From positions 2,356,001-2,420,000 of the forward strand of contig OZ218963.1 of NCBI GenBank assembly GCA_965112735.1: a stretch of 64,000 nucleotides of DNA. The letters are read 5' to 3'. Numbering within the stretch: position 1 is the stretch's first letter; every line of letters begins with the position of its first letter. Below, one piece after another: positions 8,217-32,520 of the stretch. A program made the position numbers and the translations under genes. The stretch is from Phaeosaccion multiseriatum (taxonomy: Eukaryota; Protista; Ochrophyta, other classes). Under the pieces are notes generated by a model that saw nothing but the letters and a program-made list of their open reading frames with translations, ran no database searches and was not told the DNA's origin.

Positions 8217-8483
8217 ACCCGTTTTGACACAATTGCTGATGAGGATATCCGAAAAACAAAGGAAGGAGAGGCAGGACAGGACAGGACCGGGAAGGCAGGA
8301 GGCACACAGGCCATCTAGGACCAGACTCGGAGGCGGTAGGCAGTACCAGCACACGGCCTACAGGGGACAGTGGCTGCCACAGCGGTGGGCAGAGGATAGG
8401 CAGCAGGCAGGGAGCGAACAGCAGAAGCGGCACAGCAGTGTGGGGGTGACGTGAGGGGCGCTCGGTCGGCCACAGCGGCACCC

Positions 8484-11160: not shown

Positions 11161-11410
11161 GGTGGTGGTGTCGGTGGCGGACGTGCAGCAGCAGCCGGAG
11201 GAGGAGGAGGAGGAGATGGCGGAGGAGGCGGAGGAGGAGGCGGAGGAGGCGGAGGAGGAGTAGGAGGAGGCTCAGAAGGCGAAGGAGGAGGAGGAGGAGG
11301 AGGAGATGGCGGAGGCGGCGAAGGTGGAGGAGGAGGACGTGCAGCAGCAGCCGGAGGAGGAGGAGGAGGAGATGGCGGAGGAGGCGGAGGAGGATGCGGA
11401 GGAGGTGGAG

Positions 11411-11491
11411 TGTTAGAAGTCGTACTTTTGGTACCTCCCGGTCTGAATTCAGAGGGCAGGTATCAGTCTAGCAAAAGTACGACTTCTAACA
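11411..11491. mobile_element. Solo family-A hairpin
   Basis: 81-bp TGTTAG...CTAACA; TSD GGAG (inside a GGA-rich tract, so weak evidence on its own). Confidence 0.8.
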
Positions 11492-11615
11492 GGAGGAGGA
11501 GTAGGAGGAGGCTCAGAAGGCGAAGGAGGCGGAGGAGGAGGAGGAGATGGCGGAGGCGGCGAAGGTGGAGGAGGAGGAGGAGGCAACGACGGAGCGCCCC
11601 GACAGGCGTGGCTCG

Positions 11616-13324
11616 TGTAAAGAGTCTCGTTGCTCTCCACCTAGGATAGGAGTAGCCGCATGGACAAGGTAATAGCAACCCCAAAGCCAGCCTGGCAGCC
11701 AGCCTTGTCTCTATTAGCTTTATCCGTGAGCCATCCTAAACGACCAACCTGCTGGGAGGTGAGTGAGAAACGGGCCACGCACCGTTTCTCACCGTATTTG
11801 CCTGGGCCTGGGCCATTGACATAATACTGACTTTCAACATCCCCGTCAGCCATCCCTGCACTTCTAACATCCCCCTGAACTAAACTATTGCGTGTCCCCA
11901 CGCAACTCAAAGCGGGTTCGCCTACTAAAGCTCGACTTGTAGCAAAAGCCTCCATGTTGCTTCCAATAAAAACGGATGAGAAATATGCAAAACTCACCCA
12001 GGTGTGTGCGACCGCTCCTCCAACACACACCCTCCTGTATTGGTGAGAAAACCCCACGACTCAAACTCACCCACACAGGCTCACGGATGAGAACATCCCA
12101 TGACTCAAACTCACCCGCGCAATTCTCTATCTCCACTCCTACTCGCCACCAGCGTTGCCAAAGCCTCGTTGCGCACCACTAATGCTGACTGCTCAAGTGT
12201 TTACTGGTGTGCCTACAAGGCACCCAGACAGTCCCTAAAGCAGCCTTGCGAGTATCCTTCTCTGTCTCCCGCCAAGCTCCGTGCAACAGCAACAGCCGCG
12301 CTGCTGCCACACTCGAAAGCCGTGCCCGCTGTAGGGCACCGCTCTCGGCAATTCTCTATCTCCACGGCCCACCAAGCTCCAGCAGCAATTTCCGTGCAAC
12401 AGCAACATCCGTGCTGCTGCCACACTCGAAAGCCATGCCCGCTGACTAAGGCACCACTCCCGGCAATTCTCTATCTCCACGGCCCACCAAGCTCCAGCAG
12501 CAATTTCCGTGCAACAGCAACATCCGTGCTGCTGCCACACTCGAAAGCCGTGCCCGCTGTAAGGCACCGCTCCCGGCAATTCTCTATCTCCACGGCCCAC
12601 CAAGCTCCAGCAGCAATTTCCGTGTAACAGCAACATCCGTGCTGCTGCCACACTCGAAAGCCATGCCCGCTGTAAGGCACCGCTCCCGGCAATTCTCTAT
12701 CTCCACGGCCCACCAAGCTCCAGCAGCAATTTCCGTGTAACAGCAACATCCGTGCTGCTGCCACACTCGAAAGCCGTGCCCGCTGTAAGGCACCGCTCCC
12801 GGCAATTCTCTATCTCCACGGCCCACCAAGCTCCAGCAGCAATTTCCGTGTAACAGCAACATCCGTGCTGCTGCCACACTCGAAAGCCGTGCCCGCTGTA
12901 AGGCACCGCTCCCGGCAATTCTCCATCTCCACTGCCCACCAAGCTCCAGCAGCAATTTCCGTGTAACAGCAACATCCGTACTGCTGCCACACTCGAAAGC
13001 CATGCCCGCTGTAAGGCACCGCTCCCGGCAAACTCAAAGCTACCGAGCTGCTGCCTGAGCCTCTTGGCCAAGGTCAGCTGCCTTCGGGATTCTTTGGGGT
13101 TGTGAAGAGTCACGTTGCTCTCCACCTAGGATAGGAGTAGCCGCATGGACAAGGTAATAGCAACCCCAAAGCCAGCCTGGCAGCCAGCCTTGTCTCTATT
13201 AGCTTTATCCGTGAGCCATCCTAAACGACCAACCTGCTGGGAGGTGAGTGAGAAACGGGCCACGCACCGTTTCTCACCGTATTTGCCTGGGCCTGGGCCA
13301 TTGACATAATACTGACTTTCAACA
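11616..13324 (-). mobile_element. Non-coding TRIM family 1 (LTRs 11616-11839 and 13101-13324)
   Basis: 224-bp direct repeats TG...CA; PPT GGGGA; no coding domains; flanks do not match. Confidence 0.9.
12280..13031. repeat. ~113-bp tandem repeat (~6.5 copies) inside the TRIM
   Basis: Unit ...CAATTCTCTATCTCCACGGCCCACCAAGCTCCAGCAGC... recurs at 12350, 12465, 12578 etc.; fewer copies at 17833-18245. Confidence 0.9.
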
Positions 13325-13582: not shown

Positions 13583-13676
13583 TAGAAGACGTCCTCTTTC
13601 TAGACTGTCAGCTATCCACTGAAATTTCACGTAGGGTAGGGTACCTAACAGTGTAGCAAAAGGACGTCTTCTAACA
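13583..13676. mobile_element. Hairpin family E (A/B-related), left end clipped
   Basis: TAGAAGACGTCCT...AAAAGGACGTCTTCTAACA with CTATCCACTGAAATTTCAC loop. Confidence 0.7.
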
Positions 13677-15161
13677 ACGTGGGGTACCTCGACGTGTTTG
13701 AGCCGCTTGGTCCAGTTGACGCTTCAGCAGCGCTGTGGAGAGGATCGGCTGATACATGCTATCCAAAGGGAACCAGGTGGCCCCACCTTCAGCCACAGCG
13801 AGAAGCGGGGAAATTCGCTCGTAAGCGTATTTTCCACCTGAGACGTTAATGAGCTTGAGGCCACAAGACAATAGGCCCGCCATATGTCCGAATGAGCTGG
13901 CACCGGTGGCCAGTACATCGGCTCTACTCATACACTTGATAGCGTCGCCTTCATTCCCATTTGCGTGGAGCACCACTTGAATGTCCGAGCTGTTGCTGCT
14001 CTGCGCTACATAGTAGCTTCGGAGCCTGTCGCCGAAGCCGCAAATACCGCCTTTCTCCCTCTCTGGGCACTCCTCTGGAAGCTGTGCTTCGTGACAAGCG
14101 CGAACCTCATCAGGGCGAATGGAAAGATGGGGAAAGTCCTTAAACGTATTTGTCTCCATGTCCGGGCAAGTCTCAGTTTCGGTAAAGACGTGAAACGAAG
14201 GTGGTGAATATCCCAGCTCGGATATCACCGACGCAATATGCTGCATAAGGTCATGCATGCTTCCCCAAAGCCTCATGCTACCAGTTCCCTTGTCCCCCAT
14301 TCGAAGATGAAACGCAACAGCCAAGGCGGACCCCGTCTCGTCATAGCCACACTCAGGTACCGTGTCGTACCCAGCTCGAGGGAAAACGTTGAAAGCCTCG
14401 CGTATGCGGCGTAGGCCTCTGCCGTACGACGAAGGCAATGGATGTTCCGGGAGCTGCCGCCACGGCTGCCCTTGTAGAAGTATCGCCGCGGCATGATTAG
14501 AATAGAGACTAAGCCGAGTCACGGTGTCATTTTTGTGTTGCTCGAGCATCTCCAGAATCTTAGCATCGCTACTTTCGCTACCTGGGGAAATCACAGAAGG
14601 TGGGGGCCCATCTCCCCCCAGAGGGATGTCGCTGGTGTAGTTGCCCAGATTGAGAAATTGCGCAACGTCAAGATCAGCGCATCGATACTTGTCGGCAAGC
14701 TCGACAAGGCCATTTGTTGTTGCTTTGTGACAATAAAGAGTGCCGTTTCGCCATGCTCCGCGGTGGCTCGGCAAGGCATCCCATGCGGCGAGGTCGAGCG
14801 AGGAATCCGTTGCAGGCGTCTCCTTCATGGGGGGAGCTTCCATCGTACAACCCAGGCCTTCTGCCACCAAAAAAGCCCACCACACTCTCATGACCTCTCC
14901 GCCTAAGCCATCGAAGTTTACTTGAACGCGAACGGTGCAAGGAGTTTGGCGGAGCTGCCATGCATTCATCAGATTCACGTTGGAGCCATTAAACCAGATC
15001 GGATCAAGACTGCTAGCCCACGCCTCCACTGCGCGGACGATTTCTTGTTGGTCCCACTCTAGCCCTCCAGTCGAATCTGCTGCTAGTGCTCCTCTTCCGG
15101 CCGAGAACAGCAGCAAAAGGCAAAGCGCTAAGCAGAGGACAGAGACAAGGTGAGAATTCAT
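13671..15161 (-). CDS. Secretory-pathway protein with fucosyltransferase-like (GT11/GT23/GT68-type GT-B) C-terminal domain
   Basis: Signal peptide; AVAFHLRMGD, FHVFTE and DAIKCMSRADVLATGASSFGHMAGLL resemble the HxRxxD / xxDD / SSF motifs of alpha-1,2-, alpha-1,6- and O-fucosyltransferases; stop codon supplied by hairpin E. Confidence 0.65.
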   Translation of the reverse strand: MNSHLVSVLCLALCLLLLFSAGRGALAADSTGGLEWDQQEIVRAVEAWASSLDPIWFNGSNVNLMNAWQLRQTPCTVRVQVNFDGLGGEVMRVWWAFLVAEGLGCTMEAPPMKETPATDSSLDLAAWDALPSHRGAWRNGTLYCHKATTNGLVELADKYRCADLDVAQFLNLGNYTSDIPLGGDGPPPSVISPGSESSDAKILEMLEQHKNDTVTRLSLYSNHAAAILLQGQPWRQLPEHPLPSSYGRGLRRIREAFNVFPRAGYDTVPECGYDETGSALAVAFHLRMGDKGTGSMRLWGSMHDLMQHIASVISELGYSPPSFHVFTETETCPDMETNTFKDFPHLSIRPDEVRACHEAQLPEECPEREKGGICGFGDRLRSYYVAQSSNSSDIQVVLHANGNEGDAIKCMSRADVLATGASSFGHMAGLLSCGLKLINVSGGKYAYERISPLLAVAEGGATWFPLDSMYQPILSTALLKRQLDQAAQTRRGTPRC

Positions 15162-15729
15162 TCCTATGATACTAGATAATCCAGACGTCGCATTTCCCTG
15201 TCTTAGGAACTGAAATGTTCTCCCCAGTGTAAATTAGTTATATCAAACCGCGAAAAGTGGTGTGCTAAAGCTACGAACAGTACAGACAGCTCAGGGGTTT
15301 GGGCTAATATATGCCGCGTCTGTTGCGACGTCGGTGCCCGTATTAATAGTCTCTTTACTGCCCGCTGCCTCAAGCGTGATCTCTTGTCTTGTACTTGCTT
15401 GGCAGTCTACAGGTCCCTTCGTTGCCACCTGGCACTTTCGGGACTCTCAGGTACGTTGAGGCGGGAACTCTCTTTAGGACCGTTCTTATTTCTATAACCC
15501 CAGAACGTCCACCCGGAAACCCCAGGCGAGATGGTCCCTCATCACCTTATCACAGTGGGTTTTAGAGGGCATCGACTTTCGGGCAAAATAATTTTAAGAC
15601 CCACTACAAGAAGAGCGTGGTAGGGGAGGTTCTCCCATAACTGCGCTGGGATGGTATTTCTTGTGGAGCCGTATGCTTTACTTAATACAGAGACAGACAC
15701 TGGAGGGAGGAAGAACCCAAGGCGCGTGT

Positions 15730-17334
15730 TGTGGAGGTATGCTCACAAATGTCGTCAGTTCATAGTTTCAGTTTCTTCGTTCAGTTTCAGTTTCCTTTTA
15801 GTTCTTTCCATCTCCTAAAATATTACTTCATCTCTCGTTGTTACGATATAAGGCATCCCAATATGCCTTCAGTATTATCCAAACGTTACGATATAAGGCA
15901 TCCCAATATGCCTTCAGTATTATCCAAACGTTTGGATAATACTGAAGGCATATTGGGATGCCTTATATCGTAACACTCGTCCTTTCGTTTTCTCACGAGT
16001 GCTCCACCTCTGGTGGATAGCGACTGACCTCCTGCTATGTGCAGGTAGGGTCTATTGCTATTGGTAGTCATCCTTTCAGTGCACGACTCCACAATAACTA
16101 GTTATTACCGGATAGTACATTTCATACACTTTCCAATTTCAGCGGCGACCAATGTCCGTCTCGCCACTACAACACCCGGTGGTAGGCTGTACACCACCCG
16201 CGGTAGGCTCTTCCAGCATCGAGGTCTACATCCAGCCTTTTTTGGCCGATCCCAGTCAGAGAGCGGCCGCAGTGGATCGATGCCAGCAGCAGATTGTGCA
16301 GCTCTTTTCGGCGCTGGATAAATGTGGGCAGCTCGCCGTGGTCTACAACGAGAGTGCGGACGAATGGGTAGAAGGCACAGCTTCTGCAATCAGCGGAGGC
16401 CTCGCTGCCGGCCTCAAGCCCCAACATGTTTTCCTACAAGCGGCGTACTCCACCTTTGGACCTCATTCTTCACACCTTCCAGGGCCCTCTCTTGGTGCCC
16501 AAGATCAGCTATGCCATCACGGATAACGACATGACCAAGTTGGTTACCGTGGGCCGCGCCACCCTGAAGGAGCTCGGCATTAATATCCAAGAGGCCCTTG
16601 GTAAGGCAGCAGCGACGCAGCACATCAAAGACGGCGCCACCGGCCCTCCGCGTCAGGCGTCGGAACGTACTGTCACCTTTCTCCGTGACCGTTACTCTCC
16701 TCACTTCTAATCTTCTTCTGTTTCCCTCGGACTCTTTCCTATACCTTCTGAGTACCAATGTGCCCTGAAATAATTCTCCCTACCCTCTGGTGTTTCTAGA
16801 CTGTTTGTGAGGCCGCTTTTTCCCTCCCCCTTGTGTGAGGCAGCTGTTCCCTCCATCTGTTCTGTTCCCAAGTCGGTGTAGCTAGGGCTAATTCTCTCTA
16901 CTCTCTGGTGTTTCTGGACTGTTTGTGTGGCCGCTTTTTCCCTCCCCCTTGTGTGAGGCAGCTTTTCCCTCCATCTGTTCTGTTCCCAAGTCGGTGTAGC
17001 CAGTCTGTGTGGATTTCCCTCTTTTCCTTACTTCCTTTCCTCCTATTTGTGTTCATCTCTTTCTCTTTCCTTATCATGTCTGCGTATGCACACATGCTTT
17101 CAAAGGGGGGACTGTGGAGGTATGCTCACAAATGTCGTCAGTTCATAGTTTCAGTTTCTTCGTTCAGTTTCAGTTTCCTTTTAGTTCTTTCCATCTCCTA
17201 AAATATTACTTCATCTCTCGTCCTTTCGTTTTCTCACGAGTGCTCCACCTCTGGTGGATAGCGACTGACCTCCTGCTATGTGCAGGTAGGGTCTATTGCT
17301 ATTGGTAGTCATCCTTTCAGTGCACGACTCCACA
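15730..17334 (+). mobile_element. Deleted gypsy derivative (TRIM-like), LTRs 15730-16093 and 17113-17334
   Basis: 222-bp LTRs TGTGGAG...CTCCACA; PPT AAAGGGGGGAC; TSD GTGT; residual protease tail (VGRATLKELGINI). Confidence 0.9.
15839..15975. mobile_element. Family-D hairpin (left arm duplicated) in a 5' LTR
   Basis: TGTTACGATATAAGG...CCTTATATCGTAACA; 5-bp TSD CTCGT; empty site in the sister LTR at ~17217. Confidence 0.92.
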
Positions 17335-18378
17335 GTGTGCACATTTATTACATTTAATTCTAATTCAAATAACTACTTCGAAGTAATTACATATGGAAAT
17401 GAAAATGGCGCTGGCCTGCTGGGCCCAGGTTAGGGCCAGACCCACCCCGCCGTGATGGCAGCTGGAGGGGTGAGGCAGCATCACCCCACGGTTCGTGCTC
17501 AAAAATGTTAGAAGTGCAGAGATGGCTGACGGGGATGTTGAAAGTCAGTATTATGTCAATGGCCCAGGCCCAGGCAAATACGGTGAGAAACGGTGCGTGG
17601 CCCGTTTCTCACTCACCTCCCAGCAGGTTGGTCGTTTAGGATGGCTCACGGATAAAGCTAATAGAGACAAGGCTGGCTGCCAGGTTGGCTTTGGGGTTGC
17701 TATTACCTTATCCATGCGGCTACTCCTATCCTAGGTGGAGAGCAACGTGACTCTTTACAACAACCCCAAAGAATCCCGAAGGCAGCTGACCTTGGCCAAG
17801 AGGCTCAGGCAGCAGCTCGGTAGCTTTGAGTTTGCCGGGAGCGGTGCCTTACAGCGGGCACGGCTTTCGAGTGTGGCAGCAGCACGGATGTTGCTGTTAC
17901 ACGGAAATTGCTGCTGGAGCTTGGTGGGCCGTGGAGATAGAGAATTGCCGGGAGCAGTGCCTCACAGCGGGCACGGCTTTCGAGTGTGGCAGCAGCACGG
18001 GTGTTGCTGTGGCACGGAAATTGCTGCTGGAGCTTGGTGGGCGGAGGAGACAGAGAACTGCCGGGAGTGGTGCCTTAGACAGCGGGCATGGCTTTCGAGT
18101 GTGGCAGCAGCACGGATGTTGCTGTTACACGGAAATTGCTGCTGGAGCTTGGTGGGCCGTGGAGATAGAGAATTGCCGGGAGTGGTGCCTTAGACAGCGG
18201 GCACGGCTTTCGAGTGTGGCAGCAGCGCGGCTGTTGCTGTTGCACGGAGCTTGGCGGGAGACAGAGAAGGATACTCGCAAGGCTGCTTTAGGGACTGTCT
18301 GGGTGCCTTGTAGGCACACCAGTAAACACTTGAGCAGTCAGCATTAGTGGTGCGCAACGAGGCTTTGGCAACGCTGGT

Positions 18379-20923
18379 TGTAAGGCATCCTTTTGCTAGG
18401 CTGGCAGCTATCCACTGAATATTCACGGGGGTAGCTGCCAGCCTAGCAAAAGGATGCCTACTTACATGCCTGTCAGTTAAGGTCGATCCTTCCCCCCCCT
18501 CCGAAAACTCCTCCGAAAACCTTGGGGGGGTAACTACCTAGGGGAAAGGCGCACTTTTATAGTGTCGACCTGTCCGTGGATCGATTTTTTGGGTCCGTGG
18601 AGCGATTTTTTTTGGTCCGTGGAGCGACTTTTTTCCTATAATTTTCTGCTCACCCCCCCCCTTCCCCCTCCTCTAAGAAGGTCAACGCTGCTTAAATAAC
18701 CACAACTGCTACATTCCAGCAGTAGTAATGGCTTAGTGAAGGATTTCTCATGGCAGGAACGTGGCAGGGCTGGTAGTAGCAGCAGCAGTCAAGCAAAGAG
18801 AGGAACAAATCAAACATTTCAAACCATGACACCACCAGCAGCAGCAGAGACAAATGGAGGAGAATGAAGAGGCCTTAGTGGGGCAGCACAAAAGGATGGA
18901 ACAGCACCACCTGTGTGACAGTCCTGAAGAGATTTCTGGCGCACAGGGCTCTGAGAATACGAGTGGAAAGGCCGCAGGAGCGCACGACGACGATGACAGT
19001 GATTGGGACGACGAGACTTGGACGCAAGCCGTTGCTCTGGCAGATGAAGCCGCTGCGGCGGTACAACCAGCGACCGCTTCGAAACCGGGCACTCAAGCGG
19101 CAGTGGAGACTGAGCTTGCGACAATTGCCGCAGCACAGGAGGAGACGCGGTGAAACAATTGCAGACAGCTATGCAGAGATTGAATATCGAGAAGGCGGCT
19201 GTAGAAGATGCATACGAAGTTCGAGGAGGACGAGGCCGGCCCCTGAAGGGAATAAGCGAGAAGCTGCGGTTGAATGGTGCAGCTATGAAAGGGATTGATG
19301 AGAATTTGCTTCTCCCAGCGGAGAAGGAAGAGAAGCGAGAAAGAGGGCTGTGACTTGTCTTCGAGCGCAGACAGGGTAGATGGTGCAAGTGGTGACCACT
19401 TCGTAGGGTTTTCTTCGCCGCCCCTTGGTCGCACGTCTAAGCGGTACGTTCTCAATGATCTCCTCTTCCTTCTTGATGCCTGGCTGCTCTTGTCCACGCC
19501 CCCCGCCCACTCTGGGCCGCCCTTTCTGAACATACCTTAACACACTTATTACCCCTGTTGTTCTCGCCCCCTTTTTACATCTTTTTTTGTGCTAGCAGGG
19601 GTGAGAAAGACGAGGATGAGGACGAGGAGGATGGAAATACGGGCGACAAGGGGGGGCGGTGGTAGTGGGGGAGGGTTTGGGAAGAATAGACCACCAGCGC
19701 AGACTGAGTTCACTCGAGGCGGCAAGGGATCCAAAGGAAGGGTTGCCTACCTGGCAAACTCCCTACTACAGGGCCTCGACGCCAAGCCGCCAGTCTGAAG
19801 TGGGAGGGCATGCCCAACGTGACGTGTTTGTCTGGCCCCCCCACCTCTTCCACAACCTTGGAGAGGACCACCAGCAGCCTCTTTGCGCATGGGATGCATC
19901 GTCAGAGTGTGTACAAGCTTATGGGTGGACGTCGCCGCAGCGGGCTGTGTCTGTCACCAGCCTCGAGCAGGAGGAGGAGGAGGAGGAGGAGGAGGGGAGG
20001 GAGGGAAGAGGGGGAGGAGGAGGAGGAGGAGGACCATCATCATCAGCAGCAAGAGAATCACAAGGGGGAGGAGGGGGGGGGGGGGGAAGGAGGAGGAGAA
20101 TCAGCTGTGGGAGGAGGAGGAGGAGGAGGAGGAGGAGGAGGAGTAGGAGTAGGAGTAGCAGGTGGTGCTGGTGCTGGAGGAGACGGGGGGGGGGGGCGGG
20201 GGAGGAGGAGGAAGAGTTGCAGGTGCTGCTGAGGCTGGAGAAGGAGGGGGGGGAAGGAGGAGGACGAGGAGGGGGAGGAGCAGCAGCAGCAGCAGCCGCC
20301 ACAGCACTGTGGCCGGCACGGAGGATCAGGGGCAGGAGCATCTGTAGCGCCTGCAGAGGCTGCTGCTGCAGAGGGTGGTGTCGCTTTCGGGGGAGGTGAG
20401 AGTACCCACGAGAGGCAGCTATGGAAGAGGAGGGAGGCCGCGAAAAGGAGAAGAAGAGAGGCAGGCGAGGAGGGAAAGGAGAAGGCGAGGCTCCAGAAAA
20501 AGGCAGCGCGGGAAAGGGAAAGATTACAGCAGGATAAGGACCGGCCAGAGGGTGATTTACCCGTTTCCGTGTGCATAGTATTGTATATACAACACTTAGG
20601 TCTTCTACAGTTGCCTCTACTCTGGGGAGGAGAAGGAGAGAGAGGAGTGTCGCCGCAGGCGGGGAAAATTTCTAATTCCTTTTTTTTCTCCTTTTTTGGG
20701 CCGGCGGTCGACGGTATAAAAGTGCGCCGATTTCTCCCACACCGAGCCTGTTACCTCGAATTTCAGTGTCATGCCCAACTTTCGCCCTCGGAAATTTTCT
20801 CACCATCCTCAGAATCGAACCCCGTCTGGGCATGTAAGAAGGCATCCTTTTGCTAGGATGGCAGCTATCCACTGAATATTCACGGGGGTAGCTGCCAGCC
20901 TAGCAAAAGGATGCCTTCTTACA
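18379..20923. mobile_element. Hairpin-ended element family B (H-S-H) enlarged by a nested TIR element
   Basis: H 18379-18466 and 20833-20923; TSD TGGT; empty site at ~12145. Confidence 0.9.
18548..20728. mobile_element. Non-autonomous TIR DNA element (~2.2 kb)
   Basis: TIR GGCGCACTTTTATAnnGTCGACC at both ends; splits the B spacer; no clean TSD; only low-complexity ORFs. Confidence 0.65.
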
Positions 20924-21459
20924 TGGTGGCGAGTAGGAGTGGAGATAGAGAATTGCGCGGGTGAGTTTGAGTCATGGGATGTTCTCATCCGTGAGCCTGT
21001 GTGGGTGAGTTTGAGTCGTGGGGTTTTCTCACCAATACAGGAGGGTGTGTGTTGGAGGAGCGGTCGCACACACCTGGGTGAGTTTTGCATATTTCTCATC
21101 CGTTTTTATTGGAAGCAACATGGAGGCTTCTGCTACAAGTCGAGCTTTAGTAGGCGAACCCGCTTTGAGTTGCGTGGGGACACGCAATAGTTTAGTTCAG
21201 GGGGATGTTAGAAGTGCAGAGATGGCTGACGGGGATGTTGAAAGTCAGTATTATGTCAATGGCCCAGGCCCAGGCAAATACGGTGAGAAACGGTGCGTGG
21301 CCCGTTTCTCACTCACCTCCCAGCAGGTTGGTCGTTTAGAATGGCTCACGGATAAAGCTAATAGAGACAAGGCTGGCTGCCAGGCTGGCTTTGGGGTTGC
21401 TGTTACCTTGTCCATGCGGCTACTCCTATCCTAGGTGGAGAGCAACGTGACTCTTTACA

Positions 21460-21556
21460 TCGTGCGCCAGCCCGCTGCCCCACTTCTCATGTTGCCGCAG
21501 GCGGATCGTGCTTTCCCGTTTAGACCTATGCCCTCTTTTGACATTCACTCCTGGAT
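21460..21556 (-). repeat. Fragment of a second copy of the exonuclease-gypsy pol 3' end
   Basis: Reverse complement of ~53276-53372. Confidence 0.8.
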
Positions 21557-21814
21557 GCAAATGTGGGTTCGAGTCCTACCGGCGGCATGATGGATATTTC
21601 CCGAGGGGGGGAGCCTGTGAAATACCTGAGGGTGGTACCCTGGGAAAAAGAACTGGAAATTGGTATTGGTATGGGGACAGTATTTAGGAGCGAACGTTTC
21701 GGTAGCACCAACCCCCCCGGTGTGAAGGTAGGACTCACAGAGCTCACCTTTTGTTACGATATAAGGCATCCCAATATGCCTTCAGTATTATCCAAACGGC
21801 CTTATATCGTAACA
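21557..21814. mobile_element. Family-D element (putative spacer plus deleted hairpin 21752-21814)
   Basis: GGGTTCGAGTCCTACC ... GGTAGGACTC inner inverted repeat, then TGTTACGAT...ATCGTAACA. Confidence 0.6.
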
Positions 21815-21899
21815 CCTTGCCGCTTGCTTTGGTGAGCAAGGCAGGGGCGGAGTGCCGTCGTTTTTTTCTGCCTCCGCTGCCACCGCCCTGTGACGCCTT

Positions 21900-23316
21900 C
21901 CGCCTCTTGCCTGACCTCGGGTTCTCGAGCTTCTTCAGTTAATGCCATCGTGAGTCCCCTCTGCGCCCCTTTCCTCTTGCTTTCACACAGAGGCACGCAG
22001 CATATCACACACATCCTCGTTGTCTTTCCGTTCTCGCACATGGCGCAACGGCGTAGACGACGCCTCGGGTGTCCGTCACCCACGCCTGGTGGATCACCTG
22101 TGGTCGGTGAGGGGCTGGGACAGTTGCCTTGAAAGTGTCGTCTCCCACCGTACAATGGATCATGCCATCACCGATGCGTGCCTCGTTCGCGAACTTTGCC
22201 GCCACCGCTCTCGCCAAATAGCGCGTGTTCTTCGTCGTCCTTGTCTTGATCTCCAATGACCGTAGTAGCAGTTCCTTCTTGTCACTCTTGTCACTCTCGT
22301 CCTCTTGAGCGACAGGGGCGCGCAGTAGGAGCAGACCGTCAGGGCTTGCGGCGAAGTGTTGCTCATTGCCTGCACATAAGCCCGCACTCCACGACATGAC
22401 TAGAGGGGAGAGTGGGAAGAGGTACAGACACGGCAGCATGACAAGTTTGGGAGCGTATGTGAGGCGTAGCGACGAAAGTAAGACAGGAAGGCGGGAGGGG
22501 AGGGGTGCTGAGGGACACCAGTGGCGACGCGGAGCAAAGGGCGAAGCGGGAAGGGAAGGGGAGGGGGGGGCGGGGCTATGCCAATTTGCTCGTCTCTCAC
22601 CTGACCCCCGGCAGCTTCTCGACGGCCTGGAAGATTGCAGCCTCGTTCACCTGACCCTCCTTCATGCCTCGAGTAGATACAACATGTCCGCCGAACCACA
22701 CGAACACGAGTCCACGCAACGGCGCCCGACGTCCATCAGCAGCCTTGTCTTCTTGTCCACCTCGTCGTGGCCTCCATCCGTGTTGGTGGCGTCGTCGTCC
22801 ACGCCTCCGAGGGGAGGACCGGGCGCGGTGTCGTACGTTTGTTCGACGCCGAGTGTGTCATCGTCGCCGTCCGAGTCATCCGAGTCCGAATCCGATTCGT
22901 CGCTCACGTCGTCGCCATCACCAATGAGCGCTCTTCGAATTCGTCAAGGAGGCTCGGAAGGTCCACCTGACTGTCCCAGGTGGCGCCTGAGGGCTGGCGG
23001 AGGTTAGGGTTTTGCAGGAGGATGTACAGCGAGCAACGTCAGGAGTGAGGAGAGCAGATCAAAAGGAATGGGAAAGGGTGAGAGGGGGTTTATACGCGCG
23101 TCTAACTCCATGCACGCAGTCCAAAGCAGCGCACTGCACACAGCAACTCGAAAAAGGCCCTTGGCCAACACACAGCTACTCACCGTTCCTCTGTCGGCCT
23201 TGAGGGGCGTCACATGCTGCCAGATGAACATGAAGCGCTCCACCGTCATAGGAGTGATGTCCGCTAATTTTGCCAGGTCTTCGAAGGCGGTTTCGGTCGG
23301 AGCCTTTGTGGTGCCT
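21900..23316 (-). pseudogene. Decayed DNA-transposon coding fragments: piggyBac-like pieces plus YqaJ/lambda-exonuclease-like domain
   Basis: MTVERFMFIWQH; Cys-rich RRCAMC...CVICCVPLC; ASPDG...LEIKT...QVIHQAWVT. Confidence 0.45.
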
Positions 23317-23530
23317 TGTAAGAAGGCATCCTTTTGCTAGGCTGACAGCTATCCACTGTGCTAAGCTCAGATAACGTAAAATTATCCTGAACCTCTAGTA
23401 TTGCGCTTAGCACACCACTGAAATTTCACGGGGGTAGCTGTCAGCCTAGCAAAAGGATGCCTTCTTACATTCCTGTCAGTTAAGGTCGATCCTTCCCCCC
23501 CCTCCGAAACCTTGGGGGGGTGACTACCCG
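23317..23530. mobile_element. Family-B hairpin plus partial spacer, with nested 58-bp family-C element (23357-23414)
   Basis: C insert TGTGCTAAGCTCAG...GCTTAGCACA flanked by CCAC/CCAC. Confidence 0.85.
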
Positions 23531-24435
23531 ACTCTGTGCTTTTGCATCTTAGAGCCGCAGCAGTCATGGACAATGTCGCGCGCCATGACCTACAACTGGC
23601 CTGAGCCACAGCCTGCCGGCGGCAGCCGATAGCCCTGGCCCCTGGAGCACCCCCTTCCTGGCCCTCCCCCACCCCGACGCCCGTCTTTGTTTGAAATTGG
23701 CAATGCTCGCGTCAACAATTTCGCAGATCTTGGCCACTGCTCGAAAAACTACCTTTTCAGTCCACTGCGTCCTGGCACCCGTTTCTTCCCCCTTCCCTCT
23801 TTTCCCCCTCTCTCCCTCCCCCTCAATACTTATACTTGTTTATTTTGTGTAAAGGGGGGTACATGGTAATTTCCAGGGGGTGCCAAAGCAGGGCGGGCAG
23901 ATGCGTCTGCTTCGCCCGTACTCCCATCCACCCCGTTGGATTCGCTCCCGATAATCCCACTCGTCCCCCCGGGCCGGGCGGGTGGGGAAACTTTTGCTGT
24001 CCCTGCCAGCCCCTTCTACGCGGTGAACTGCTGGGTTGCCCCCTTCGCTGTCCTCCTCACCGCGCTGAGCTCTTCGGCACTTGCTACAACTCTTGCGACG
24101 CCGTACTCGCGTCGCCTCCTCTTTCCACAGTTGTGAATGCTAGATTCTTGCTATACCCCGGTGGGATGAGCGTCTTACGTGGCCGTGCGGGCCGTTGGGC
24201 CCTCGCGTCAGTCGGCGCGGCCTATCCTTGCCTCCATCCGATCTTTCTATAATAAGTGCCAGTCCTCTGAAAATATCGCGTTTTTTTGCTCGATCGACAC
24301 ATAAACTCGTGCTGTTCGAAAAACTACTTTTTAACCTCAGAAAAAGGACGTGGTTACCCCCCCCGACAATAGAACGGCCCTCTTGCACACGACCGACCAC
24401 TTAACACACAAGCCTCACCGGGCTCCGCGGCACTG

Positions 24436-27400
24436 ATGCCGCAAAGGACGCTATGGGCGACTGTACTGATGCTGTTCTTGTCATTGGGGATGCTGTGGAG
24501 TAGCGGTCGGTGCGAGGGTGCGGTAGTTCCCGGAGGAGGGGCACTGCCATCGGCCGAGGAGGAAGGAAGGCACCATTCCGACGACAAAGGAGCTGGTGTT
24601 CCTGCTGGTGGGGATGCTACGGCTGCTGATATCACTGGTTTAGCCTTGTTCTCGAGGAAGCTGGAGGAGCCGCAAAGTGTACCAAGAGGCGGCAGCAGGT
24701 GAGTAAGGAGTTAGGAAGACGCCATGGAGGAGAGATCAGAGCGTTGGCCTGCCTTTGTTCAAGTGGTGTCCACGGGACCGAGGGGCGCTGATCTTCGGCT
24801 CCTCCGAAGCAGCCAAGGCTGGTGATTTGAGGATATCACGGCAGAACTTACCACTGCCTGGCCACCAAGATGAGAACGCACAGTTATGCTAGGGAAGAAG
24901 GGGGGGGGGGGGGGGTAGTGCGCCGGATACAGGAGTGCTGATCGGCGTGTGTTGGGGCACCTCTCCTCATCTTGCACACTCTCTGATGGACCTTTCTCTT
25001 CCCCTTCCACATCGGCCACGCACCCACATTTGGTATGCGTCGCCACATCGGGATACACCATGCACCAATTACCCTGGTCCTGATGGTGCCGCAGCGCGTT
25101 GGCTGCACATGGCAGCAATCCTGGGAGCCAGGGTGACAACCTGGGGAGTTCTCTCCACCGCCATAACATCATCGCGACTAACAAGCGCACGGATGATGGC
25201 AGTGGGCCGTTCACTCCCCTTGCTGCCCCGACAGATTTAGATATTTTTATCCACATGGAGGACTACCACCCGCAGCACCGGCAAGCCCACACTTTCCTTT
25301 ACATAGACTCGCAATTCGGAGAGGAGGATGCGACGAGTGGGGGGGGGGGCAGCGCAGACACCGACCCTGCGATTCCCGCTTTCCTGACTGCAGCGTACAG
25401 CATCATGATGAACGAGGAAATATGCGACAGGGATGTGATATTTCTCGTGAATGAGGAATTCGCTAGCGGGGCGAAGGAAGCCATGGATATCCTCATCCCC
25501 GCTGCCAATGAGAATCGCCGCCGGCTCAATGAAAGCCACCAAAACTGCTTTGGGGGCTTTGTTGTGAGGCTGAAAGTACCATTTTTCCCCCAAAAAGCCG
25601 GCCCTCCCCTTTGTCCCGACACGAGAGATCATTTCTTCTACATCAGTATGCAGAAGCTTCTTGTGACAGGCATGACAGAGTATGAAATGGTCGCGTTCCA
25701 AGACCTAGACTTGATCGTTCGACCAACGAAAGAGGGGGCGGATGTTCTACGTCTGGACGACGGCATTGACTTCAGGGCACAATACGGTAACCTCTCTCCA
25801 GTCAATGCCGGACTTTGGACCCTTCGCCCCAGCCACGAGGCCTTCGCGGACTTTCTCAGTGCCCTTAGAACCGGATTTTCAGAGGAGCTGGGATGGAATA
25901 ACGTGGGCCCACTGCCCAGGTGGGGCGAGGACAGTATTTTCATGGCGGGTGATGTTCATAATCTTCCCCTCGAGATGAGGCCGTACATGAACCTTTCTGT
26001 AGGAGAAACGATGCCATGGGTGCATTGGGGAGCGTGCGGAGACCAGGGGCTTCTTGCTGCCCTCTTCATCATGAACGCCCGTGCCTCTGAGGGTCATCGC
26101 AAGCGCGTCGCGTTCATCGAAGGCCCCCGCGACCCCGGGAGGATGAATTCGTTTACTCACTTCACAGGACTTCTCAAGCCCTGGAATATTCAGGCAGAGT
26201 GGTATATTCTACTACTCGAACGGAAGGGGCGACGCATGGAACTTCTCGAACTTTGGTGAGGAATTGGAATTGGGGCGAGATGTCTCCTCTACCCTCCCCT
26301 TCCGTCCTTTTCTTCTTCCTTTTTTCCCTCTCTTCCTCCCTCCCTTTTTCTTTGCTCCCTCCTTTTTTATTTCTGCCAAAGGGCGCTGCCCCATGAAGAC
26401 ACCCCCCCCCTCCCCTTTCTCCCCCAATCAGTCCGTCCCCTATCATCTCGACATGGCTTCCCCCCATGTTCATCATAACAGCCTACCACCACCCACTCAC
26501 TCACTGACAGCCGCCTGGCCAGCCTAACCCTCTTCTTCGCTGTCGAAGGTACAACTCCTTCTCCCAGCTCCTTCGCGACGTCCCTGGCGTACTTGAGCTA
26601 CCAGATGTCCAAGCAATTCAGCGTATCGTGTACGTCGATGAAGATGTGTCCGTTTCGGCCGCAGTACCGCCACCTACCAACGTAGCCTTTCCCTCCCGCT
26701 TTCGCACCGACGAAAACTGCTACGGAGATCGGTTCAGACTGTTTGCCTGTAAGCCGTCCTTTTTTATGCTGGGGGTGCAAAAGAGTGGGACCACCGACAT
26801 ATATAATCGCCTGGTGAAACACCCCCATATTGTCAACACGAAGACGAAGGAGCCCGGGTTTTGGTCTTACCATGCGCACCGTGGTGCTATAGAAGAGTTT
26901 CGTACCTACCTTGCCAACTTTGACCCGCTGGTGGAGACGCTGAACAGTTTCCAAATCAAGGCTGACAAGGCGGCTAGGCTCGGACAACCCCCACCAGAGG
27001 GTGTAAAAGGAATGGGGATCCACGCCAATATGATATCAGGCGATGGGTCCGCCTCTACACTCTACATGTACCGCCCTTTCTACGGACCGCGGGATGTCGA
27101 CGGTTTTCTAACCCCACAGCTCATCCACGGAAATCTACCCAATGCCAAGTACATTGCCGTCTTTCGCCACCCCGCGGATCGCCTTCTGTCGGAATTTCAC
27201 TTTTACTGGGTAAGTGTAAATCCCTGTAACGCAAACCTATTATGTGTTCTTAAATTATCCACAGCTCAGCTCATAGGGGGGGACTCTGGCCTGTTGCTGT
27301 CATTGAAAGTGAGCTACGAGGAACGGCGGGGTGAGGGACTCTCGTTCATGCGTGCACTCTCCTTCCGTACTCCCCATGTTTGCTTTGTCCTTCCCTCTCT

Positions 27401-28207
27401 CCCTCTTCACCGCCCTCGGTTCGCCAACCAAAACGTCCCACCATGGCCTCTCTTGCATGCCTGCTCTGTCCTTCCCCTCTCGCTCCCTCTTCACCCCTCT
27501 GTTCGGCAACTCCCCAGATCGCTGAACTTTATATGTGGGACGAGGAAGACCCCAAAGGGGCTATCGAAACGCGAGCGCACAAGCGATGCACTGACCCCCT
27601 GACACGATCCATCGAACACAAAGTTGGGCGGGCTGAAGAAAGGGCGGCCCAACCGAAGGGAGTAGTGGCCTCAGCACGAAAATCAGGACGAAAAGACGGA
27701 GCAGGAGTAGGGGGGTACGTTGGAGGGCCTGATGACCTACTTTTTGATGCTCTTGTGGACCTCAAAATTGAACGCTGGAAGAAATGTGAAGACGCCCGTG
27801 GAGCTGAGTATTGTGCTTTCTTGGACGAGTTTTCGGATAATCCAGGTCAGCTCTGTCCAGCCCTGGGTCTCGGTCTGGGCATGTATAGCATCTTTCTGGC
27901 CAAGTGGTTTCAAGCGGTGCCTCGGGAGCAGGTGTTGGTCCTTCGCTCTGAGGATTTCAAGGGTGACTTACGCGGGAGCATGTCCAAGCTGTTCGGCTTT
28001 CTCAGTGTACCACAGCCATCGGAAATAGAGTGGAAAGATATTTTGGTTAACGAAGTGGCAAATGCCCACTCCTACAGCCAAAGTACGGGGGTAAACGCGT
28101 CAATGATGGATGAGACCCGATCAAAGCTGCTCGAGTTTTACCACCCGTTCAATGTGCAACTGAATAACTTGCTGGGGGAGGAAGACTTCACCGCGCTTTG
28201 GGTGTAG
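24436..28207 (+). CDS. Bifunctional GT8 glycosyltransferase-carbohydrate sulfotransferase (CHST15-like); exons 24436-24698, 25095-26255, 26549-27209, 27518-28207 (924 aa)
   Basis: Signal/TM peptide; GT8 motifs QKLLVTGMTEYEMVAFQDLD, VNAGLWTLRPS, GDQGLL, HFTGLLKPW; PAPS-binding motifs GVQKSGTTDIY and RHPADRLLSEF; all three GT-AG introns keep frame (2775 nt). The first intron is the least certain. Confidence 0.8.
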
Positions 28208-28329
28208 GAAGACGGTTGCGGAGTAGGCCACTCGTCCATGCCACATCGGAAGCCAGTGGCCCCTTTTAATACACTTTGCTCTCGTTCTTACAAGTAGAAT
28301 CCATAAAGCTTTATCCCACCAGGAGTGAA

Positions 28330-29007
28330 CGCTGAATGGTTTATAGCGAGCCAATGACTCCTTATATACCGCTACAAAAAATATGCACAGAAGAAAAGAT
28401 CTCCGTCAGTAAGAGGTTCGATTCTCACCCGTATAGGGCAGTCAAATATTTTACGGCCGTTTCAGAAACCCGGCGCGAGTGGGAACAAGATCCTGCGGAA
28501 TATCCCCAGAACGCCAAGATGGCGGGGGGGGCGGTCTGATCAACTGCTCGCGAAGATTGAAGGGTGTTAGCGATTAGAATCGTTCCTCTTCTGTGCATAT
28601 TTTTGTAGCGGTATATAAGGAGTCATTGGCTCGCTATAATCGCTGAATGGTTTATAGCGAGCCAATGACTCCTTATATACCGCTACAAAAATATGCACAG
28701 AAGAAAAGATCTCCGTCAGTAAGAGGTTCGATTCTCACCCGTATAGGGCAGTCAAATATTTTACGGCCGTTTCAGAAACCCGGCGCGAGTGGGAACAAGA
28801 TCCTGCGGAATATCCCCAGAACGCCAAGATGGCGGGGGGGGCGGTCTGATCAACTGCTCGCGAAGATTGAAGGGTGTTAGCGATTAGAATCGTTCCTCTT
28901 CTGTGCATATTTTTGTAGCGGTATATAAGGAGTCATTGGCTCGCTATAAACCATTCAGCGCTGAATGGTTTATAGCGAGCCAATGACTCCTTATATACCG
29001 CTACAAA
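28330..29007. mobile_element. Head-to-tail tandem of a ~315-bp MITE (2 copies plus a fragment)
   Basis: ~60-bp TIR CGCTGAATGGTTTATAGCGAGCCAATGACTCCTTATATACCGCTACAAAAA; junction CATTCAGCGCTGAATGG. Confidence 0.8.
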
Positions 29008-29107
29008 GCACACAACGCCTTTGCTATTAAATTAAATTAAAGAAATGTTACGTAATCTAACGGGATAAAGGGCCGCCACACGCATTCACATAGGCCAGTT
29101 GGTGTTT

Positions 29108-29778
29108 GTGGAAAGTCGATTCGTAAGTCAAGGGCCCAGGCCCAGGCAGATACGGTGAGAACGGGGGGCGTGGCGCTCACTATCCTATGTGCGTAGGTGG
29201 TCGTTTAGGAATAGCACGCGATCAGTGAATAGAGGCAAGGCTGGCTGCTAGGCTGGCTTTGGAGTTGCTGTTACATTGTCCGTGTGTCTAGTTCTATCCT
29301 ATCTGTAGGGACAGCGCATGTCGTTTTACAACCCCAGAGCCAGCCTAGCAGCCAGCCTTGCCTCTATTAACTTTTCGCATGCTAGTCCTAAACGACCACC
29401 TACGCACATAGGATAGTGAGAGCCACGCCACCCGTTCTCACCCTATCTGCCTGGGCCTGGGCCATTGACTTACGAATCGACTTTCCACATCCCCAATAGC
29501 TATCCGTCACTTCCAACATCCCCTTGCGTAAAACGACGTACGCACGACCGACATGCGCTGTCGCCTACAGATAGGATGGAACTAGACACACGGACAAGGT
29601 AACAGCAACCCCAAAGCCAGCCTAGCAGCCAGCCTTGCCTCTATTAACTTATTGCATGCTAGTCCTAAACGACCACCTTCGCACATAGGATAGTGAGAGC
29701 CACGCCACCCGTTCTCACTGTATCTGCCTGGGCCTGGGCCATTGACTTATGGCCCATCTCATCTGAGGCCTTCCAACA
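29108..29778. repeat. Cluster of TRIM family-2 LTRs/fragments in both orientations
   Basis: 29108-29330 (+), ~29339-29525 (-), ~29526-29778 (-); similar to 36811-37062. Confidence 0.75.
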
Positions 29779-30002
29779 TTCACGGGGGTAGCTGCCAGCC
29801 TAGCAAAAGGATGCCTTCTTACATGCCCAGACGGGGTTCGATTCTGTGGATGGTGAGAAAATTTCCGAGGGCGACAGTTGGGCATGACACTGAAATTCAC
29901 GGGCTCGGTGTGGGAGAAATCCTAGGTAGTTACCCCCCCAAGGTTTTCGGAGGAGTTTCCGGAGGGGGGGGAAGGATCGACCTTAACTGACAGGCATGTA
30001 AG
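29779..30002. mobile_element. Family-B half hairpin plus spacer
   Basis: TTCACGGGGGTAGC...CTTACA then full B spacer; second hairpin cut after TGTAAG. Confidence 0.85.
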
Positions 30003-30344
30003 TGTTAGAAGTCGTGCTTTTGCTAGACTGGTACCTACCCTCTGAATTCAGACCGGGAGGTACCAGTCTCGCAAAAGCACGACTTCTAACAAGGCCATTG
30101 CGAGTTCGAACCCTGGCTGTAGCTTGTGAAAAAAAGTGTGTTTTTCGGCGAAAACTGGTACCGGCTTGCACCCATTAGTCTGATTCCCAGACTGCGAGTT
30201 ACTTCTCTCCACTATGTGCGGTGGGGGGGGGGGGTTCGACTTCTACCAATGGGCTTGTTAGCAGTCGTGTTTTTGCTAGACTGGTACCTCCCGGTCTGAA
30301 TTCAGAGGTTAGGTACCAGTCTAGCAAAAGCACGACTTCTAACA
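30003..30344. mobile_element. Family-A element H-S-H
   Basis: H 30003-30091 and 30256-30344; TSD not preserved. Confidence 0.88.
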
Positions 30345-30604
30345 GTGCCCGATACCGAGAAGCGGCCCAGGAAGCGCAATCGCAAGGCTAACCTCATTCC
30401 AGACAGCCAGTCCGCCAGTAAGATGTATGGTGGGCCTTGCGGACCTCGCTATAAAGTGTAAAAAGAGGGGGGTAAAGCTCTTTGTTGTTCATCCACTAGC
30501 TAGTCGCCAGTTGTGGTAGGGAAATTCTAAAATTTAGCACGATAATCGCCCTAGGGACATCACCGTGGCGCTCGGCTCCCCGCAGGCATAATCTCCCCTC
30601 CCCC

Positions 30605-31059
30605 TGTAAGAAGGCATCATTTTGCTAGGCTGGCAGCTATCCACTGAATATTCACGGGGGTAGCTGCCAGCCTAGCGAAAGGATGCCTTCTTACATGCCT
30701 GTCAGTTAAGGTCGATCCTTCCCCCCCCTCCGAAAACCTCCGAAAACCTTGGGGGGGTTATTACCTAGGATTTCTCCCACACCGAGCCCGTGAATTTCAG
30801 TGTCATGCCCAACTTTCGCCCTCGGAAATTTTCTCACCATCCACAGAATCGAACCCCGTCTGGGCATGTAAGAAGGCATCCTTTTGCTAGGCTGGCAGCT
30901 ACCCCCGTGAATAATGGATGGTGAGAAAATTTCCGAGGCAGGGCGAAAGTTGGGCATGACACTGAAATTCACGGGCTCGGTGTGGGAGAAATCCTAGGTA
31001 GTTTTGCCATAAATATTCAGTGGATAGCTGCCAGCCTAGCAAAAGGATGCCTTCTTACA
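30605..31059. mobile_element. Family-B inverted dimer (partly deleted), ~220 bp upstream of GMD
   Basis: H-S'-half H-S(part)-half H; TSD CCCC (within a C-run). Confidence 0.85.
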
Positions 31060-31280
31060 CCCCCCCCTGAGCCCCACTGAGAAGCCTGAAGCCCGCGCTG
31101 GCCTGCGGCCAGAAGCCCGAAGCCTGGAGGGGGCTATGGCCCAGAAGCCCGGAGCCCGAGAAGCCCTGCGGGGAGCTCCGATGGCGCCGCAGGCGAGGAA
31201 AATTTCTAATTTCTTTTTGTTCTCCTTTTTTGGGGCCACTTTGCGCCCCTTTTTAAACACAGACACACAACCCTATATAG

Positions 31281-32520
31281 ATGGCGGATATTGCAAAGCC
31301 AAAGGTTGCCCTCATAACCGGCATCACGGGCCAGGATGGCTCCTACCTCGCGGAGCTGCTGCTGGAGAAAGGATACGTGGTGCATGGCATCATTCGCAGG
31401 TCGTCTTCATTCAACACGTCGCGCATCGACCACCTCTACCAGGACCGCCACATCAAGGATGCCAAGCTCTTCCTGCACTACGGTGACCTGACGGACTCCA
31501 CCAACCTCGTGCACATCATCTACGAGACGCAGCCGGACGAGATCTACAACCTTGGCGCCATGTCTCATGTGAAGGTCGGTGAAGCAGAGGGGAAGTTTTG
31601 GAGAGAACATGGAAATTGGAAGAGGGGAGGGGAGCACTCTTCGTTGTTATGCGTATGCATGCTCTCTTTAACTTGCTATCGAAACAGAACTTGAGAACTC
31701 TTATCATCTCGCGACGATGTTCTTTCGTTTCAAGGTGTCCTTTGAGATGTCCGAGTACACAGCAGAGGCCGACGGCGTTGGCTGCCTGCGCCTCCTCAAC
31801 GCCATGCGCTCGGTGGGCCTGGAGAAGAAGTGCCGCTTCTACCAAGCCTCCACCTCGGAGCTGTACGGAAAGGTGCAGGAGATCCCCCAGAAGGAGACTA
31901 CGCCCTTCTACCCTCGCTCCCCCTATGGAGTGGCCAAGCAGTACGCCTTTTGGATGCTCATCAACTACCGAGAGGCCTACGGCATGCACCTCACCAACGG
32001 TATTCTCTTCAACCACGAGAGCCCCCGCCGCGGTCCCACTTTCGTGACGAGGAAGATTACTCGGGCAGTGTCTCGCATCCACCGCGGCCAGCAGGACTGT
32101 CTCTTCCTGGGCAACCTCGACGCCAAGCGAGACTGGGGACACGCTCGCGACTACGTCAAGGGCATGTGGCTCATGGTGCAGAGGGACACGCCGGAGGACT
32201 ACGTGCTCGCCACGGGAGAGTGCCACGAGGTGCGCGAGTTCGTCGACAAGGCCTTCGCCTACGCGGGCATTACCATCGTGTGGGAGGGCAAGGGGGTGGA
32301 CGAGAAAGGCTACAACGCCACCGATGTCGAGAAGAAGAACCCTCTCGTGCAAGTGGACCCGGAGTACTTCAGGCCCACGGAGGTGGAGCTGCTGGTGGGC
32401 GACCCTTCCAAGGCCAAGCGCGAGTTGGGGTGGGAGCCCGAGGTGACTTTCCAAGAGCTCGTCAACGACATGATGAAATCAGATCTCGAGCTTGTGGACA
32501 AGGGCGACAAGCACTCTTGA
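31281..32520 (+). CDS. GMD: GDP-mannose 4,6-dehydratase; exons 31281-31574 and 31735-32520 (359 aa)
   Basis: [70 protein letters not shown]; one phase-0 GT-AG intron. Confidence 0.98.

Follow-up and report, generated by a model that had tools for sequence, protein, structure and literature searches.

We analysed a 64,000-nucleotide stretch of the Phaeosaccion multiseriatum genome (assembly GCA_965112735.1, contig OZ218963.1, positions 2,356,001–2,420,000, forward strand). We refer to the whole of this stretch as the window, and coordinates are positions within it. Three intact protein-coding genes lie between positions 13671 and 32520, a span of ~19 kb. These are an open reading frame (ORF) for a fucosyltransferase-like (FT-like) protein, a candidate gene fusion joining a glycosyltransferase family 8 (GT8)-like domain to a sulfotransferase, and GMD. 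The initial annotation described three glycan genes within 19 kb. Our ORFs, Pfam matches and splice models confirm that they are there and intact. It also proposed that they form a functional cluster for sulfated fucan synthesis. We favour a different interpretation, to which we give a probability of about 0.55. In this reading, the locus holds three intact nuclear glycan genes, each with a separate chemistry, in a lineage-specific neighbourhood within transposon-rich ochrophyte DNA, and it is not a demonstrated biosynthetic cluster. The features are listed in Table 1. For the spliced genes, each exon was used separately in the searches, rather than a joined protein sequence.

Table 1. Positions of genes, exons, repeats and one spacer in the window.
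Feature	Start	End	Strand	Evidence or remark
FT-like gene, intronless, 496 amino acids, N-terminal signal peptide	13671	15161	-	ORF; HMMER family; AF2 model
Fusion exon 1: start codon, signal anchor (MPQRTLWATVLMLFLSLGMLW), stem	24436	24698	+	Open frame; donor CAG/GTGAGT at 24699
Fusion exon 2: GT-A, GT8-like domain	25095	26255	+	Translation and motifs; acceptor at 25095, donor TTG/GTGAGG at 26256
Fusion exon 3: N-terminal half of predicted PAPS sulfotransferase	26549	27209	+	Pfam; PDB alignments to 3rnl and NDST; donor TGG/GTAAGT at 27210
Fusion exon 4: C-terminal half of predicted sulfotransferase, stop codon	27518	28207	+	Sulfotransfer_1 positions 138–189; weak PDB matches to Teg12/14 and 3-OST; acceptor at 27518
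GMD exon 1 (Rossmann N-terminus)	31281	31574	+	Pfam GDP_Man_Dehyd positions 1–90, E 1.5e-37; donor AAG/GTCGGT at 31575
GMD exon 2, through stop codon	31735	32520	+	Pfam GDP_Man_Dehyd positions 89–332, E 2.2e-112
Non-coding repeat of ~1.7 kb, left copy	11616	13324	+	Stops 347 bp short of the FT-like gene's 3' end
Inverted right copy of the repeat, 96–99% identical	17505	21459	-	Split by a ~2.5-kb insertion with hairpin-type ends (18379–20923)
Spacer between fusion gene and GMD	28208	31280		60% (within 28602–31003) recurs elsewhere in the window; no ORF of at least 130 amino acids

GMD is identified with certainty

The identity of GMD, as given in the initial annotation, is certain. Both exons match the Pfam family GDP_Man_Dehyd (PF16363, of the short-chain dehydrogenase/reductase (SDR) superfamily). 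The scores are 130 bits for family positions 1–90 and 376 bits for positions 89–332, against a cut-off of 27. Consensus splice sites join the two exons and the product is 359 amino acids long. At its N-terminus, exon 1 encodes the glycine-rich NADP-binding motif of SDR enzymes. The top database relatives are named ochrophyte GMDs, merely 75–77% identical. They comprise a brown-algal cluster (Nemacystus, Ectocarpus, Saccharina and Sphacelaria), followed by Tribonema, Florenciella and Chrysophaeum. In a quick tree, the GMD of the window is sister to the brown-algal GMD group. The alga is accordingly a stramenopile with affinity to brown algae, and the protein database contains nothing closely related to it. 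By homology, the enzyme is cytosolic and converts GDP-mannose to GDP-4-keto-6-deoxymannose, the entry step to GDP-fucose.

The single closest database GMD (76.7% identity) is encoded at positions 10001–11191 of a 29-kb contig (ENA ERZ21818090). This contig is gene-dense, with a C962R-type primase domain and ORFs that mostly lack a family, and has a giant-virus-like look. Its GMD falls with the brown-algal GMDs in the quick tree.

A GT8-like domain is joined to a sulfotransferase in the splice model

Our model of the fusion gene has four exons joined in frame (2775 nt, 924 amino acids). The acceptors before 25095, 26549 and 27518 are pyrimidine-rich. Exon 2 encodes three GT8-type motifs: DLD (in QDLDLIV), NAGLWTLRPS and HFTGLLKPW. 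The DxD and HxxGxxKPW signatures, to which these correspond, are GT8 hallmarks. Exon 2 had no match to PF01501, even at E ≤10, and its sole Pfam match, short of the threshold, was PF03407 (E 0.28). The DxD region gives a weak alignment (E 0.52) with the GT8 structure 6mw5. Among the 30 nearest neighbours by language-model features, 9 were GT8 clusters. Exon 2 is likely to encode a GT8-like GT-A glycosyltransferase domain, judging by these motifs and neighbours.

The assignment of exons 3 and 4 to a predicted sulfotransferase dependent on 3'-phosphoadenosine 5'-phosphosulfate (PAPS) is solid. Within the ORF at 26628–27602, Sulfotransfer_3 (PF13469) scores 28.9 bits against a cut-off of 27, and Sulfotransfer_1 (PF00685) scores 23.6 bits against a cut-off of 22. 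The C-terminal part lies in the ORF at 27380–28207, which alone reaches 18 bits against the cut-off of 22. The sequence GVQKSGTT, corresponding to the PKxGTT-like 5'-phosphosulfate loop, aligns to GAAKCGTS of 3rnl and to GPQKTGTT of NDST. Similarly, RHPADRLLS, corresponding to the 3'-phosphate motif RxPxDRxxS, aligns to NPADRAYS of NDST.

We infer the join between the GT8-like and sulfotransferase exons from the in-frame splice model. No in-frame ATG is present upstream of the PAPS loop in the sulfotransferase frame. Hence, the sulfotransferase requires an upstream exon, which supports the fusion. Of the fusion claimed in the initial annotation, the sulfotransferase is thus upheld by Pfam scores above cut-off, the GT8 domain is likely on its motifs and the join has the standing of a splice model. 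GT8 enzymes are retaining and use UDP-sugars, not GDP-fucose; they are not fucosyltransferases. The product would be a type-II membrane protein that combines a retaining, UDP-sugar-using transferase of GT8 type with a PAPS sulfotransferase. Such a protein would act in the Golgi, attaching an alpha-linked hexose, uronic acid or xylose and sulfating what it has made.

The FT-like protein is one of a small family also found in brown algae

The FT-like protein matched no Pfam family and had no sequence match in the PDB. Word-index protein searches, with the protein or with its family alignment, found no relatives. An exhaustive search with HMMER (E ≤1e-3), covering 1.84 billion representatives, returned 48. 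Full-length proteins account for only two of these (509 and 490 amino acids; E 9e-24 and 4e-23, respectively). Both are 'unnamed protein product' entries from the brown alga Scytosiphon promiscuus. The rest are fragments of exon size that come from ENA and Logan assemblies. Scanning metagenomes with the motif alignment gave a single 3.9-kb contig, which offers no gene context. The gene in the window has no introns, whereas its Scytosiphon relatives span 3–6.6 kb. In S. promiscuus, tandem FT-like paralogues stand side by side, at positions 5218–8504 and 10001–13064 of one of the two fetched loci.

Scanning all 49 family members against Pfam at E ≤10 gave noise only. A PDB search with the family profile gave a single spurious short match, to a snake toxin. 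Neither the protein nor the profile had a sequence match to FUT8 at E ≤10. The family alignment shows three conserved blocks: LNFAxHVRMGDR, FHVFSET..PCPS..F.EFP.WPV and LHVG.DV..ALSCMI.ADGVLMGCSTFGQVAGL. The family carries the motifs AxH-x-R-x-G-D-K/R, FHVFSET..PCP and C-M-x-x-A-D-G..G-C-S-T-F-G-Q-x-A-G. The first motif is nearly invariant. H285 and R287 are each conserved in 40 of 41 sequences and D290 in 39 of 41. Position 291, lysine in the window protein, is K or R in 39. Further downstream, S422 is present in 10 of 10 sequences.

The spacing of this H-x-R-x-x-D-K/R motif is identical to that of H363, R365, D368 and K369 in FUT8, and a conserved serine follows downstream in the FT-like family. 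The same FUT8 residues, together with S469, are conserved in divergent brown-algal GT23 proteins, which are described on that ground as genuine fucosyltransferases (PMC11468063). We also compared the family profile with NodZ of plasmid pNGR234a using hhalign. The only alignment fell exactly on the NodZ sequence HVRHGNG and was weak (E 0.029, probability 1.7%).

Structural models place the FT-like protein among GT-B enzymes

We predicted the structure of the FT-like protein with AlphaFold 2 (AF2). From the single sequence, the model was unusable, with a mean predicted local distance difference test score (pLDDT) of 36. With the family alignment, pLDDT rose to 62.8 and the predicted template modelling score (pTM) was 0.59. 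The C-terminal half was better modelled, and the model shows a strand followed by the donor motif, which in this superfamily opens the C-terminal domain. This model was compared with 48,161 chains using VIA-align. The top matches were mostly GT-B-type enzymes, with Z up to 9.6–9.7. They include three fucosyltransferases: FUT8 (202 residues aligned at Z 8.2), POFUT2 (Z 8.1) and NodZ (Z 7.4). These values are tied with those of UDP-GlcNAc 2-epimerases, heptosyltransferases and trehalose-phosphate synthases. The model thus shows that the FT-like protein is predicted to adopt a GT-B fold, with two Rossmann-like domains.

Other comparisons point towards fucosyltransferases. A Foldseek search with the whole model yielded low template modelling (TM) scores, of 0.2–0.25, so that the second rank of Arabidopsis FUT1 (AtFUT1) is a hint only. 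Two GT11 clusters were returned by a fold search of the ESM atlas (TM 0.53–0.54). In a feature search with the protein, a GT11 cluster scored 0.94 and an O-FucT cluster 0.92. We think it probable that the FT-like protein is an enzyme of the fucosyltransferase superfamily (GT11/GT23/GT65/GT68 and GT37). The initial annotation had taken the 13671 protein to be fucosyltransferase-like, and both the GT-B model and the fucosyltransferase-type donor motif agree with this. As a secreted or Golgi GT-B enzyme with the H-x-R-x-x-D-K donor motif of this superfamily, the FT-like protein would probably transfer fucose from GDP-fucose.

Brown algae are reported to possess GT23, numbering ~9 genes in Ectocarpales and frequently arranged in tandem, and to lack GT11, GT65 and GT68. 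Hence, the Scytosiphon relatives of the FT-like protein are most simply GT23-type.

The less likely alternative is that the FT-like protein is a GT-B enzyme for some other donor, or a non-transferase such as an epimerase. The fucan theme would then be an artefact of motif reading, and GMD alone would be fucose-related. Such an enzyme would fit with the failure of Pfam to recognise any of the 49 members and of the PDB to yield a match, even with a profile. It would also suit the top structural matches, in which UDP-GlcNAc 2-epimerases and assorted GT-B enzymes tie with FUT8, POFUT2 and NodZ, as well as the weakness of the NodZ alignment and the middling model. However, another donor would leave the near-invariant H-x-R-x-G-D-K/R motif, with its FUT8 spacing, to be explained, and the sole profile alignment falls on the equivalent motif of NodZ. 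Moreover, GT11 and O-FucT clusters emerged from two independent neighbour searches, and AtFUT1 from Foldseek. A fucosyltransferase-superfamily enzyme is the reading that we carry forward.

Linkage of the three genes is not conserved in sampled relatives

The physical linkage of the three genes is real. The initial annotation suggested a check of synteny in relatives. We fetched ten related loci with 10 kb on each side and searched them by tblastn with all exons of the window. Six were GMD loci: one each from Tribonema minus, Chrysoparadoxa australica and Chrysophaeum taylorii, two paralogues from one Ectocarpus assembly and one locus from a second. The other four were FT-like loci, two from Scytosiphon and two from one further eukaryotic assembly. 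Within 10 kb of these ten loci, no sulfotransferase, GT8-like, FT-like or GMD partner gene was found. Linkage is therefore not conserved in the sampled relatives. In T. minus, a NUDIX hydrolase gene (17880–18323 of the fetched locus) lies directly 3' of GMD, an arrangement that recalls bacterial gmd-gmm pairs.

Codon usage also separates the genes. The GC content at third codon positions (GC3) is 0.82–0.85 for GMD, compared with 0.56 for the FT-like gene, 0.56–0.62 for the fusion exons and 0.62–0.71 for transposon ORFs. With its high GC3, GMD looks like a highly expressed housekeeping gene. The FT-like and fusion genes resemble the transposon ORFs in GC3 and do not. Codon bias thus places GMD, indirectly, in an expression class apart from the other two. 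Such bias may be a usable proxy for expression in the P. multiseriatum genome.

As the initial annotation had noted, GDP-fucose synthase is not in the window; a tblastn search with bacterial Fcl found none. Because GT8 enzymes use UDP-sugars, only GMD and the FT-like gene are tied to fucose. The functional sulfated-fucan cluster is hence not supported, given the lack of conserved linkage in 10 of 10 related loci, the differing codon bias and the GT8 chemistry. The three genes form at most a loose, recently rearranged neighbourhood.

Four points weigh against our interpretation. First, a run of three glycan genes that includes the GDP-fucose entry enzyme and a fucosyltransferase candidate is expected only rarely if gene order is random; a rough estimate from assumed gene counts is well under one triplet per genome. 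Second, fucose-pathway genes are linked in Chrysoparadoxa, where GMD lies head-to-head with GDP-fucose synthase. Third, brown algae keep FK/GFPP, a gene for fucokinase/pyrophosphorylase, beside a gene with a sulfotransferase domain (PMC6418280). Fourth, the synteny test is a weak one: it covered 10 kb per side in distant relatives, and genes in brown algae lie far apart.

We consider it doubtful that these points reveal a functional mini-cluster for a fucose-containing sulfated glycan, with the genes kept together by co-regulation. In such a scheme, GMD would feed GDP-fucose production, and the genes for the synthase and transporters would lie elsewhere. Fucose would be added by the FT-like enzyme, and the fusion protein would add and sulfate a second sugar, or sulfate the fucan. 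All three functions fit one pathway, and the estimate above makes their adjacency by chance unlikely. In addition, the FT-like family also occurs in brown algae, the classical fucan producers. Its tandem copies in Scytosiphon parallel those of the GT23 candidates described in PMC11468063. The proximity of FK/GFPP to a sulfotransferase gene in brown algae (PMC6418280) and the bacterial manC-manB-nodZ-gmd-fcl genes of pNGR234a provide analogues. Against this stand the ten loci without conserved linkage and the very different codon bias. Furthermore, GT8 enzymes are not fucosyltransferases, and GDP-fucose synthase is absent from the window. Were a mini-cluster nevertheless present, which is unlikely, it would name missing enzymes: an unrecognised fucosyltransferase family that brown algae share, a single polypeptide that both adds and sulfates a sugar, and the entry enzyme to GDP-fucose. 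We retain the lineage-specific neighbourhood as the preferred reading.

Recent repeats on either side of the FT-like gene and within the spacers

Two copies of a non-coding repeat bracket the FT-like gene (Table 1). The repeat is built from a 536-bp unit, followed by 113-bp tandem repeats, and closes with the start of the unit once more, to the extent of 224 bp in the left copy. Repeats around the FT-like gene, and in part of the spacers, are 96–100% identical and so recent. Gypsy and copia elements are present in the rest of the window. The ends of the insertion that splits the right copy recur at 30611–30913 and 49037–49678. Diverged copies of the 536-bp unit (75–82% identity) lie beside gypsy elements at 36856–38090 and 46182–48863.

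The initial annotation held that only mobile DNA separates the genes and that they are the only three host genes. The former holds in part. In the spacer between the FT-like and fusion genes (15162–24435), 29% of the sequence recurs elsewhere in the window, and in the spacer before GMD the proportion is 60%. The remainder carries no such assignment. No ORF in the spacers has a Pfam family. The latter claim is not established because long, family-less ORFs of low complexity, at 3138–5792 (minus strand) and 8560–11649 (plus strand), could be host genes. With a third such ORF, at 6988–8052 (minus strand), these contain AEPEEAEQQLER units, poly-Gly and poly-Glu. None of the three has a Pfam family, and either host genes or artefacts of repeats could account for them.

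It is very unlikely that mobile DNA assembled the neighbourhood, such that an intronless FT-like gene recently moved or was duplicated here and its adjacency is accidental. The inverted repeats that flank the gene, at 96–99% identity, would suit such an event, as would its lack of introns compared with the 3–6.6 kb Scytosiphon relatives. However, the inner ends of the two repeats differ, with 224 and 255 bp of the unit, respectively. The repeat family also has copies elsewhere in the window, so a pair of independent insertions would explain the arrangement equally well. Furthermore, the genome is generally intron-poor; GMD has one intron here but several in Ectocarpus. Finally, an endogenous giant-virus origin of the locus, prompted by the virus-like contig that carries the closest GMD, was rejected as the main explanation because introns are present, the fusion and FT-like proteins have signal sequences and, in the tree, virus-like and brown-algal sequences group together to the exclusion of the GMD of the window.

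Implications for the search for fucan biosynthesis enzymes

The most useful result is a small family of fucosyltransferase-like proteins, unrecognised by Pfam, that also occurs in brown algae and is represented here by one intronless gene. According to a review of July 2026, none of the glycosyltransferases that build fucoidan had undergone biochemical characterisation (PMC13380512). If the FT-like family transfers fucose, it provides a candidate family missed by standard domain libraries, in the form of a compact intronless gene that should express easily. With the GT8-sulfotransferase fusion, a single protein would link elongation of the chain to its sulfation. Proximity to GMD in the genome would be a cheap guide to candidates and is, for now, only a lead.

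Comparison with known systems

The brown-algal GT23 candidate fucan synthases described by Mazeas et al. 2024 (PMC11468063) resemble the FT-like protein in several respects. Their size is similar (the representative has 458 amino acids) and they are distant from FUT8. In addition, their N-terminus is poorly modelled, they carry the H/R/D/K/S donor residues and they occur in tandem copies. The FT-like protein and its profile lack a sequence match to FUT8, and its Scytosiphon relatives are putative CAZy GT23 members.

The rhizobial Nod-factor fucosylation locus of pNGR234a is a parallel for a fucosyltransferase of the H-x-R superfamily beside a GDP-fucose gene, since nodZ adjoins gmd. However, it is a bacterial operon that includes manC, manB and GDP-L-fucose synthase. 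In the window, the genes are eukaryotic and spliced, lie on both strands, 3–9 kb apart, and are without GDP-fucose synthase. The sulfotransferase of the window is fused to a GT8 domain; pNGR234a also encodes NoeE, a fucose-specific sulfotransferase.

In Chrysoparadoxa australica, as here, genes for de novo GDP-fucose synthesis are linked to others in an ochrophyte. Its GMD and GDP-L-fucose synthase genes are divergent, ~550 bp apart (7374–12770 of the fetched locus), and a synthase exon matches GDP-L-fucose synthases in the PDB (E 9e-16). Another 5 kb beyond this pair is a GT47/RXYLT1-like gene. The difference is that the partner of GMD in Chrysoparadoxa is the second enzyme of the pathway, the one absent from the window.

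The brown-algal FK/GFPP neighbourhood (Nishitsuji et al. 2019, PMC6418280) also places a gene for GDP-fucose supply next to a sulfotransferase gene. Synteny of FK/GFPP and the sulfotransferase extends across three brown algae, and in one species the sulfotransferase is fused to another enzyme (PMC6418280). In contrast to the window, the supply gene belongs to the salvage pathway and is not GMD, the fusion partner is an alpha/beta hydrolase rather than a glycosyltransferase, and the linkage is conserved.

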